51,594 nt of DNA, taken from Octopus bimaculoides. Lineage: Eukaryota. Below the pieces are notes generated by a model. The model was given only the letters and a program-made list of their open reading frames with translations, was not told the origin of the DNA and did no database searches. Within the stretch, counting starts at the first letter, position 1. Each line of letters starts with the position of its first letter. Positions 8,724 through 9,926 of the stretch are shown piece by piece. Location of the stretch: NCBI RefSeq assembly GCF_001194135.2, contig NC_069001.1:2879058-2930651 (forward strand), in the 5' to 3' direction. A program made the position numbers and the translations under genes.

Positions 8724-9926
8724 TCAGCGTAAGCCCAAATTGACAACCATTATCACAACAGCTAACATTACTCCGACACGACCTTTACACCGCCGTTGCA
8801 TCATTGAACATCCCGAAGAACGGGAGTTTTCTGCTAACTCATCCATGAATGGTTGATTTGGATCATTACTACTGCCTGTCTCACCGGACAGACCAAGCCA
8901 TGCACTCATCGATGCCCTACCAGAGGCATTTGACGCCTGACAGATGTATCGACCCGTGTCTGATGCTGTGACATTTTGTATGACAAACCAGACCACGTAT
9001 AACCCAGTCGCCTGGTTTTTCTCAATAAACAGTTCCTGTTTTATATTTGTGCTTCCTGTTGTGTTCACCGAAGATACTTTCAACCACTCGATATAAGGCG
9101 ATGATACGCTACTCACAACACATTTGAACCTGGCAACACTACCTTCAGCTACGGTTTGGTTAGTGATGCCTTTAACTACAGGTGGTGCCTGCTTGCTTAC
9201 TCTGATTACATGTAGATTGTATCGATGAGTAATTCGGCCATGTTTATTTTCAGCAATACACTGATACTCCCCTTCATGTTTAGGGGCCAGTTTTTTCATT
9301 ATCATCGTTTGACCCTCCCATTTGATACGATTCCCTTTCTTCCATATCACTTTCGGAACAGGATTTCCATCAGCGTAGCAGCGGAGTTTTAACTGTGATC
9401 CTGCAGGAAAGTACAAATCAGATCTGTCCTTACGAACCCAAAATGGAGGTTTACCTTCACTTTCACCTTCAATACTTTTGTTGTGCATTTGGTCGGTTTT
9501 TATGGACTCTACCTGAGAAAGATTTTTGGTGAGAACTCGGAAATCTGACCTCAGTTTATGACCATTTTTTGTTTCTGTTCTGCAAGAATAATTCCCAGAA
9601 TCCTCTGCTTTATAAGGGTTCATCACTAAAGTATTCCGTGAAACTTTAATTCGGGAACTATTTTTGTTAGGGTCTGCGGTTTGCTTCAGAATCTGGGAAT
9701 TTTTGAACCAGGACATACTTAACTTGGAGTGACCTCTGACTTTACATACAAACTTCATCTTCTCACCTGGTGTGCCATATTGGAGAGGCTGGGGCTGGCG
9801 ACGGAATGAAGGCTTATGTAACCTTAAGCTTGTGTCATTTGTCACAGAAATACGTGCCCCAGCAACATGGATGACAAGAAGAAGCAAAACAGACAAAGCT
9901 GAAACAATATCGTGTGAAACGAACAT
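8724..9926 (-). CDS. FGFR/FGFRL-like three-Ig-domain cell-surface protein, 400 aa, single coding exon, no kinase domain, predicted GPI anchor
   Basis: ATG at 9924-9926 is the first in-frame ATG after an upstream stop; TGA at 8724-8726; 400 open codons of high-complexity sequence. Signal peptide about aa 1-24 (MFVSHDIVSALSVLLLLVIHVAGA). Three I-set Ig domains with Cys pairs C61-C115, C183-C223, C269-C329 and core Trp (W73, W195, W281). D2 PPFW..PAGSQLKLRCYADGNPVP..W and HGRITHRYNLHV resemble FGFR D2 (PYW..PAANTVKFRCPAGGNP.P..W, YGSINHTYHLDV). D3 ends SAWLGL versus FGFR SAWLTVL. Nine N-X-S/T sequons. Hydrophobic C-terminus VGVMLAVVIMVVNLGLR. FGFR versus FGFRL orthology is not resolvable by eye. 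Confidence 0.9.
   Translation of the reverse strand: MFVSHDIVSALSVLLLLVIHVAGARISVTNDTSLRLHKPSFRRQPQPLQYGTPGEKMKFVCKVRGHSKLSMSWFKNSQILKQTADPNKNSSRIKVSRNTLVMNPYKAEDSGNYSCRTETKNGHKLRSDFRVLTKNLSQVESIKTDQMHNKSIEGESEGKPPFWVRKDRSDLYFPAGSQLKLRCYADGNPVPKVIWKKGNRIKWEGQTMIMKKLAPKHEGEYQCIAENKHGRITHRYNLHVIRVSKQAPPVVKGITNQTVAEGSVARFKCVVSSVSSPYIEWLKVSSVNTTGSTNIKQELFIEKNQATGLYVVWFVIQNVTASDTGRYICQASNASGRASMSAWLGLSGETGSSNDPNQPFMDELAENSRSSGCSMMQRRCKGRVGVMLAVVIMVVNLGLR
8879..8887 (-). promoter_or_regulatory. candidate internal 5' splice donor CCG|GTGAGA, phase 1, at the end of Ig domain 3
   Basis: Minus strand reads TCC G|GT GAG A: last exonic G at 8885 (first base of codon 348), GT at 8884-8883, matching GTRAG. 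It falls right after AWLGLS, where FGFR IgIII exons end. Confidence 0.4.

Follow-up and report, generated by a model that had tools for sequence, protein, structure and literature searches.

A single-exon Octopus bimaculoides gene for a kinase-less FGFR-like protein with a putative GPI-attachment signal

To our knowledge, the kinase-less relatives of the fibroblast growth factor receptors (FGFRs), FGFRL1 and nou-darake, are transmembrane proteins. Here we describe a gene of Octopus bimaculoides whose predicted product belongs to the same superfamily and ends in a different way. It is located on the minus strand, at positions 8724..9926, of a 51,594 bp stretch of contig NC_069001.1 (positions 2,879,058–2,930,651; the whole stretch is referred to below as the window) and encodes an FGFR-like protein that has no kinase and terminates in a sequence resembling a glycosylphosphatidylinositol (GPI) attachment signal. 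The original prediction for this locus, made from the letters of the window alone, proposed a lipid-anchored decoy for fibroblast growth factor (FGF); the position of the open reading frame (ORF), the three immunoglobulin (Ig) domains and the C-terminus were found to be as described there.

The closest described proteins are FGFR1-4, which provide the best matches in the Protein Data Bank (PDB) both by sequence and by fold. The octopus protein shares with them a signal peptide, the colinear Ig domains D1-D2-D3, and several motifs: P-x-W at the start of D2, G-N-P-x-P...W-x-K, (V/A)-E-N-x-x-G-x-I, an NVT sequon and S-A-W-L at the end of D3. In contrast to FGFR1-4, the octopus protein and its relatives (below, the octopus family) lack a transmembrane helix, a tyrosine kinase and an acid box, contain a 12-residue deletion in D2, have Val in place of the linker Arg and Tyr in place of Ala167, and are encoded by a single-exon coding sequence (CDS) ending in a GPI-type C-terminus.

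The second group, FGFRL1 (FGFR5) and nou-darake, resembles the octopus family in that its members belong to the superfamily, lack a kinase and combine three Ig domains with a very basic ectodomain. However, FGFRL1 and nou-darake span the membrane as type I proteins, with a transmembrane helix followed by a cytoplasmic tail (PMC2754479), whereas the octopus family has neither a segment of transmembrane length nor such a tail and is encoded in a single exon. Vertebrate FGFRL1 contains the motifs PRF, SN/FN, RAR/RAK and SAFL at the places where the octopus family has P-x-W, (A/V)EN, NVT and SAWL, and the insertions found in D3 of FGFRL1 are absent from the octopus family.

The succession of a signal peptide, three Ig domains and a GPI-type end is also characteristic of the IgLONs (OPCML, neurotrimin, NEGR1, LSAMP), which carry a GPI anchor, and of insect lachesin and DIPs. 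Their relationship to the octopus family is only the generic one within the Ig superfamily (E-values of 1e-11 vs 1e-28 for FGFR; 28–43 vs 67–100 bits), and none of the FGFR motifs of the octopus family occurs in IgLON or lachesin. TRAIL-R3/DcR1 and T-cadherin are receptor ectodomains held by GPI without transmembrane and signalling parts, which act as a decoy or a modulator; their folds and pathways are unrelated, and the analogy would be a functional one only.

Full-text literature searches revealed neither an FGFR-like protein with a GPI anchor nor any publication dealing with the present cephalopod gene. A squid transcript was named "FGFR2" from its best match (69% identical) to oyster FGFR2 (PMC4361686); since the octopus family is only ~26–30% identical to vertebrate FGFRs and FGFRL1, this transcript most likely represents a canonical receptor.

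Superfamily assignment, relatives and selection

The ORF at 8724..9926 (-) consists of 400 codons and a TGA stop (exact span verified) and is the only long ORF of the window that is neither low-complexity nor N-filled. The list of ORFs, gap-free colinearity with related octopus contigs and the substitution pattern described below all indicate a complete single-exon CDS of a kinase-less FGFR-like protein. Pfam detected three Ig domains (I-set, E 6e-38) and no other domain in it.

A phmmer search of the PDB revealed FGFR3 (1ry7_B) as the best single-stretch match (residues 90–345, independent E-value 7.6e-28), followed by D2-D3 fragments of FGFR1, FGFR2 and FGFR4 (1e-22 to 1e-26). IgLONs (IgLON5, neurotrimin) reached only ~1e-11, compared with 1e-28 for FGFR3, while titin tied with FGFR3 only by summing six weak stretches. 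For further scores and alignments, the FGFR2 and FGFR3 references were taken from the output of the PDB search; FGFRL1 was represented by database sequences, and a human FGFRL1 sequence (98% identical to Pongo FGFRL1) served as bait only. The best stretch of the octopus protein scored 93–100 bits against human FGFR2/3, 75 against fish FGFR4, 67–75 against six vertebrate FGFRL1 and 28–38 against contactin, amalgam and hemicentin. Head-to-head scores with amalgam were 30–43 bits. All three domains were colinear with FGFRL1 in BLASTP, and hhalign aligned all three to FGFRL1 with a probability of 99.7%.

Comparison of structures led to the same group of proteins. The AlphaFold model of D2-D3 alone (mean predicted local distance difference test, pLDDT, 83.6) had FGFR2c as its top Foldseek match, and FGFR ligand-binding fragments accounted for 11 of the 14 top matches; Ig1-2 of PTP-delta scored near FGFR. 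The full-length model retrieved generic three-Ig chains with TM-scores of ~0.2, with IgLONs on top, and was uninformative.

Judging from these comparisons, the family belongs to the FGFR/FGFRL1 superfamily and not to another group of the Ig superfamily. The FGFR-type character ascribed to the Ig domains in the original prediction is thus borne out (67–100 bits with FGFR/FGFRL1 vs 28–38 with contactin, amalgam and hemicentin): they do not group with the non-FGFR proteins, and their best matches are FGFRs by sequence as well as by fold. An IgLON-type origin was considered and rejected on the sequence scores (~1e-11 to IgLON vs 1e-28 to FGFR3).

Relatives were sought by an exhaustive HMMER search over 1.84 billion representatives, the best 150 matches being examined, and by word-indexed searches. 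The matches listed contained three groups of relatives and no others: an octopus cluster; the P0003 cluster, with 43% identity to the octopus protein, five near-identical variants and up to 61 contigs; and the P0162 lineage, which is 64% identical to P0003 and 38–44% identical to the octopus protein, depending on the method. The best 150 HMMER matches were mostly giant multi-Ig proteins whose scores were summed over domains, and only P0001 and P0003 among them were members of the family. From their divergence, our guess is that P0003 and P0162 come from decapodiform cephalopods. So far, the family appears restricted to the few sequenced lineages in which it was found, octopuses and two further ones. 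Both distant lineages scored about equally against FGFR3 (90–93 bits) and FGFRL1 (72–97 bits) when compared with vertebrate references, the only ones used, and we could not assign the family to either the FGFR or the FGFRL1 branch.

It should be mentioned that the only short FGFR among the best 150 matches was "FGFR4 isoform X6" of Ictalurus furcatus (P0097; XP_053480430.1), which contains two full D2-D3 units and a third D3 in tandem and has no kinase. Either the gene model is odd or the tandem duplication is real.

NCBI, UniRef and EukProt all contain the identical protein. One with 97% identity carries the names "fibroblast growth factor receptor 3-like [Octopus sinensis]" (XP_029648917.1) and "FGFR2-like isoform X1 [Octopus vulgaris]", which agree with the superfamily assignment. 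The form, which the original prediction did not recognise, is therefore not absent from databases, even though no description of its anchor was found. What does stand of that interpretation is an FGFR-type, kinase-less protein with a conserved GPI-type tail.

The DNA of two octopus-type relatives (91% and 85% identical as proteins) runs colinear with that of the window, and this extends into the flanks. When the window was compared with these two sequences, the ratio of nonsynonymous to synonymous substitution rates (dN/dS) was 0.15–0.21 for the whole CDS, with the lowest values in D3 (0.02–0.08) and D2 (0.07–0.14) and higher ones in the tail (0.32–0.40), the signal peptide (0.33–0.57) and the D1-D2 linker (0.45–0.49). 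Such a pattern would be expected if the Ig domains are constrained in sequence and the targeting signals only in physical character. A chance ORF is excluded because of the overall dN/dS of 0.15–0.21 and the existence of homologues at 38–44% identity with the same architecture, and we regard the ORF 8724..9926 (-) as a functional gene under purifying selection.

All parts of the protein are encoded on the minus strand. A candidate signal peptide (approximately residues 1–24, MFVSHDIVSALSVLLLLVIHVAGA; 9855..9926) was recognized by simple rules, as a hydrophobic core of 14–16 residues followed by VAG/A, with small residues at -3/-1; the full-length AlphaFold2 (AF2) model has a low-confidence helix at residues 3–26. 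The signal peptide reported for this protein in the original prediction thus agrees with the rule-based reading. D1 (residues 38–133, C61-C115; 9528..9815) was detected by Pfam (ig/I-set) and is colinear with D1 of FGFR1/FGFR3 and of FGFRL1. The D1-D2 linker (residues 134–158; 9453..9527), as delimited by alignments, has pLDDT below 50, a net charge of -2 and a weak acidic patch, EGESEG. D2 (residues 159–241, C183-C223; 9204..9452) opens with an FGFR-type P-F-W motif, aligns with D2 of FGFRs and is modelled with pLDDT of 85–97. The D2-D3 linker, R-V-S-K-Q-A-P-P (residues 242–249; 9180..9203), contains columns that are invariant in the alignment. D3 (residues 250–346, C269-C329; 8889..9179) was defined by Pfam and alignments and contains the motifs NVT...D.G.Y.C.A.N..G....SAWL. 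In total, the protein has nine N-glycosylation sequons and three Cys pairs, one in each Ig domain. The isoelectric point (pI) of the mature ectodomain is 9.1–9.8, similar to that of FGFRL1; that of D1 is ~10, as is that of D2 (pI 10).

The C-terminal tail and possible membrane attachment

D3 is followed by an acidic stalk, predicted to be disordered (residues 347–367; 8826..8888; pLDDT below 50, net charge -4 over residues 347–372), and by the small-residue cluster N367 S368 R369 S370 S371 G372, in which S368-R-S370-S-G372 (8811..8825) is the candidate region for the omega site. An 11-residue polar and basic spacer, C373-R383 (CSMMQRRCKGR; 8778..8810), leads to the C-terminal hydrophobic segment V384-L399 (VGVMLAVVIMVVNLGL; 8730..8777), which consists of 16 uncharged residues and has a mean Kyte-Doolittle hydropathy of 3.2 in its best 12-residue window. 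The codon for R400 (8727-8729) and the stop codon (8724-8726) are the only ones that follow. No transmembrane helix, cytoplasmic tail or kinase was found in the protein: only one residue separates the hydrophobic stretch from the stop codon; no kinase motifs were present in the six frames of the window, and the ORFs downstream of the gene are all low-complexity. On these points the first description was accurate: the ORF stops after R400 and the protein contains no kinase.

This tail design is common to five sequences representing three divergent lineages (38–91% identity). S368 and S370, invariant across the five, would fit the omega and omega+2 positions. The spacer contains 11–17 residues and the hydrophobic run 12–16 uncharged residues, after which 0–3 residues remain. 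The spacer and tail sequences can barely be aligned among the five representatives, but their polar and hydrophobic character is kept; conservation by character and not by sequence fits the reading of the tail as a GPI signal. For comparison, in a crude scan of the FGFRL1 set the transmembrane stretch had 27 uncharged residues and 98 residues came after it (medians).

By rule-based reading, the tail therefore has the architecture of a GPI-attachment signal, as first proposed, and it is conserved in lineages that have diverged to 38–44% identity. We consider it probable that the protein is GPI-anchored. Two features of the tail count against this. If the omega site is at S368, the spacer comprises 13–17 residues and the removed peptide 30–35, which is longer than typical for GPI signals, and the octopus spacer is unusually basic (RR.K.R).

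The same long and basic spacer, together with a low-confidence helix at residues 377–399 of the AF2 model, would suit a protein that has a minimal transmembrane anchor with a cytoplasmic end of 0–3 residues, or one that is secreted or shed. We regard such alternatives to GPI anchoring as quite unlikely: 12–16 uncharged residues are short for spanning a bilayer, cytoplasmic stop-transfer charges are missing, and S368 and S370 stay invariant in a tail that otherwise drifts. In addition, the basic residues lie N-terminal to the hydrophobic run, on the lumenal side, which is the reverse of the positive-inside rule and disfavours a type I anchor.

The spacer of the octopus protein also contains two extra unpaired cysteines, C373 and C380 (8787-8810). 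C373 is replaced by Tyr in other octopus sequences, and both cysteines are absent from the distant relatives.

FGF-contact residues and possible function

Binding of FGF by canonical receptors involves residues of D2 and the D2-D3 linker. In FGFR1, Leu165, Ala167 and Pro169 of the segment 165-LHAVPA-170 contact FGF (PMC7600612), and an Arg in the linker (R251), "conserved in all FGFRs", forms a hydrogen bond with FGF (PMC12295313). In the octopus family, the equivalent of the LHAVPA site reads L-Y-F/Y-P-A-G, with invariant Pro174 and Ala175. The linker Arg is kept in five of the six FGFRL1 sequences aligned.

Several properties of the family weigh against its acting as an FGF-binding surface protein of the FGFR type. 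The position of the linker Arg is occupied by Val243 (9198-9200, -), invariant in all family members, and Ala167 of FGFR1 is replaced by Tyr172 in every one of them. Every member also has a family-specific deletion of 12 residues in D2 between I201 and K202, in the region from the C' to the E strand, and another of three residues just before the LHAVPA-equivalent site. The acid box of the D1-D2 linker, which in FGFR3 reads DDEDGEDEAED, is absent both from the octopus protein, which has EGESEG only, and from its relatives (PIEGQE/PSEATE). The n-region of the candidate signal peptide has no positive charge, which counts against the overall reading favoured below. Two further differences from FGFRs were seen: D2 is modelled without a D strand, and the D3 residues that align with the FGFR "SDAQP" loop vary even between octopus and the other lineages.

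The original proposal was a lipid-anchored decoy, in which FGF would be bound in the canonical D2-linker-D3 groove and sequestered. In its favour, D2 and D3 are clearly of the FGFR type and are the most constrained parts of the protein, the Pro and Ala of the LHAVPA-equivalent site are invariant, and kinase-less FGFRL1 binds FGF8 mainly via Ig2 (PMC7600612). However, the FGF-bonded Arg, conserved in FGFRs (PMC12295313), is an invariant Val here, a bulky Tyr takes the place of Ala167, 12 residues of D2 are deleted, and the "SDAQP"-loop positions differ between octopus and the other lineages. Because of these replacements, the D2 deletion and the missing acid box the decoy idea loses support, and in this form we find it rather unlikely. 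Retained binding of FGF by the protein appears doubtful, and since the canonical contact residues are changed, its ligand is uncertain.

Since the protein cannot signal by itself, the most plausible role is that of a non-signalling surface binding partner. We therefore favour, with slightly better than even confidence, a GPI-tethered, basic, non-signalling paralogue of FGFRs that binds partners at the cell surface. The N-terminal signal peptide would direct the product into the secretory pathway, where it would fold into three Ig domains colinear with D1-D2-D3 of FGFR/FGFRL1 and carrying about nine N-glycan sites. The last 28–35 residues would serve as the GPI-attachment signal; GPI transamidase may cleave near the invariant S368/S370, within S368-G372, and add the anchor, so that a strongly basic (pI 9–10) FGFR-like ectodomain would be exposed on the outer leaflet. 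Its basic D1-D2 surface may bind heparan sulfate, and FGFRL1 is reported to interact with heparin (PMC5228123). The likely partners would be heparan sulfate itself and, through it or directly, FGF-heparan sulfate complexes or full-length FGFR, and such binding might dampen or shape FGF signalling. For a role in FGF signalling of any kind, we put the chances at somewhat below even.

A serious rival to the binding-partner reading is that the protein functions in recognition or adhesion in the manner of IgLONs, lachesin or DIPs, having lost its link with FGF despite its FGFR ancestry. By analogy, the architecture is the same as that of the IgLONs, which head the Foldseek list of the full-length model, and the altered FGF-contact residues would be consistent with such a loss; FGFRL1 itself is reported to induce cell adhesion, not proliferation (PMC4899019). 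On the other hand, FGFR/FGFRL1 resemble the protein far more closely in sequence than IgLON, amalgam and contactin do, and TM-scores of ~0.2 for the full-length model indicate generic three-Ig chains only. We consider this alternative unlikely, somewhat more so than the decoy.

Transcripts, origin of the gene and its genomic setting

The relative with 85% identity is represented by contig L003 of run SRR3401912, an RNA-derived "octopus" metatranscriptome (PMC11662614). Positions 49-1460 of this contig map to 10139-8710 of the window with 85% identity in blastn and are colinear with it from 213 nt upstream of the ATG to beyond the stop codon. The upstream flank at 9927..10139 (-), at least 213 nt long and colinear with the 5' part of L003, is thus a likely 5' untranslated region (UTR). 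Further upstream, ~370–440 nt from the ATG, a ~17-nt motif is repeated four times in tandem (GTATAAGTCACAC...; ~10296-10365, -) and is followed by an acceptor-like "ttttttcag" ending at 10285. The transcript contigs stop short of both; either a repeat proximal to the promoter or a splice acceptor of the 5' UTR could be present here.

In the 43%-identity lineage, two sets of contigs differ upstream of the gene. Contigs L004-L007 read "...ttttttcttttttcttttcag|ATGTCAAT..." 435 nt upstream of the ATG, whereas in L008-L011 everything upstream of the acceptor AG (ttttcag|ATGTCAAT, 435 nt before the start codon) is replaced by up to 947 nt of another, non-coding sequence. We interpret this as a 5'-UTR intron, retained in the first set and spliced out in the second. 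From the CDS through the tail and for at least 500 nt into the 3' UTR the two sets stay colinear, which indicates that the coding sequence is one exon and that the tail is present in the mature mRNA. The CDS is thus single-exon both in octopus (window vs RNA contig) and in the 43%-identity lineage (intron-retaining vs spliced contigs), and the tail reported in the original prediction is not missing from transcripts.

The 5' UTR of L009 (positions 1-1382; the same in L008, L010 and L011) is AT-rich, at least 1.38 kb long, and contains many upstream ATGs. An in-frame ATG is located 30 codons upstream in the mRNA of the 43%-identity relative and would add an extension that does not resemble a signal peptide.

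These data also bear on the supposition that the ORF is no more than an initial large exon of a canonical FGFR gene, its tail being an intron read-through, or else a decaying retropseudogene. There are GT dinucleotides near the end of the ORF, and canonical FGFR and FGFRL1 genes are multi-exon (PMC2754479). Against these stand the position of the stop codon and the tail architecture, both conserved at 38–44% identity, the dN/dS of 0.3–0.4 in the tail, the colinearity of spliced mRNA contigs for at least 500 nt beyond the stop, an NCBI model of 398 aa with the same end point, and the lack of kinase motifs in the window. This supposition appears extremely improbable, and an exon of a larger FGFR gene or a pseudogene was rejected on the conserved stop and tail, dN/dS, the spliced mRNAs and the missing kinase motifs.

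In FGFRL1 genes, including that of the mollusc Lottia, each Ig domain is encoded by one exon (PMC2754479). The intronless CDS behind a recruited, spliced 5' exon suggests that the octopus gene is an old retrocopy of an FGFR-family mRNA, which would predate the divergence of its lineages. More tentatively, and with clearly less than even likelihood, no GPI-anchored member of the FGFR superfamily would have preceded this one. The gene could be a retrogene derived from an FGFR, older than the lineage split and possibly specific to cephalopods, whose product would be a lineage-specific, phospholipase-releasable brake on FGF signalling. In the outer membrane leaflet, the kinase-less ectodomain might capture FGF or heparan sulfate, or it might poison dimers of FGFR.

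If this proves true, a GPI-tethered FGFR ectodomain would be a new kind of cell-surface regulation of FGF or heparan-sulfate signalling, and the gene would provide a clean case in which a receptor ectodomain has become a lipid-anchored modulator, probably through retroposition. Its significance rests on purifying selection acting on a GPI-type FGFR ectodomain in at least three divergent lineages. It is limited by the existing auto-annotation, the small size of the family and its few lineages, and the altered FGF contacts, which leave the pathway uncertain; its value would rise sharply with release by phosphatidylinositol-specific phospholipase C and an effect on FGF signalling.

The 51.6-kb window is part of an animal scaffold, contains 17% N in 19 gaps and is very rich in microsatellites. 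Apart from the FGFR-like gene, no other convincing coding ORF was found in it, and Rfam and tRNA scans of the window revealed nothing. Microsatellites ((ATAC)n, (TG)n, (TA)n) directly abut both ends of the gene, at 8411-8720 and 10140-10270. Long low-complexity tracts at 1150-1912 and 2857-3663 yield ORFs of 100–160 codons, which consist of His/Pro/Thr-rich repeats or, in an (ATT/TAA)n run, of poly-Ile, poly-Leu or poly-Tyr depending on the frame; these ORFs look non-coding. The window also contains at least seven copies of an interspersed repeat of ~180 bp with 74–82% identity (translated as "...SNSAEVDFAFHPFGVDEISTS..."). The repeat has neither a tRNA nor an Rfam match and looks like a SINE-type element (short interspersed element); its copies are located at 2964-3149 (-), 24475-24630, 31208-31392, 35602-35775, 35839-36017, 36492-36588 (-) and 46234-46404 (-).

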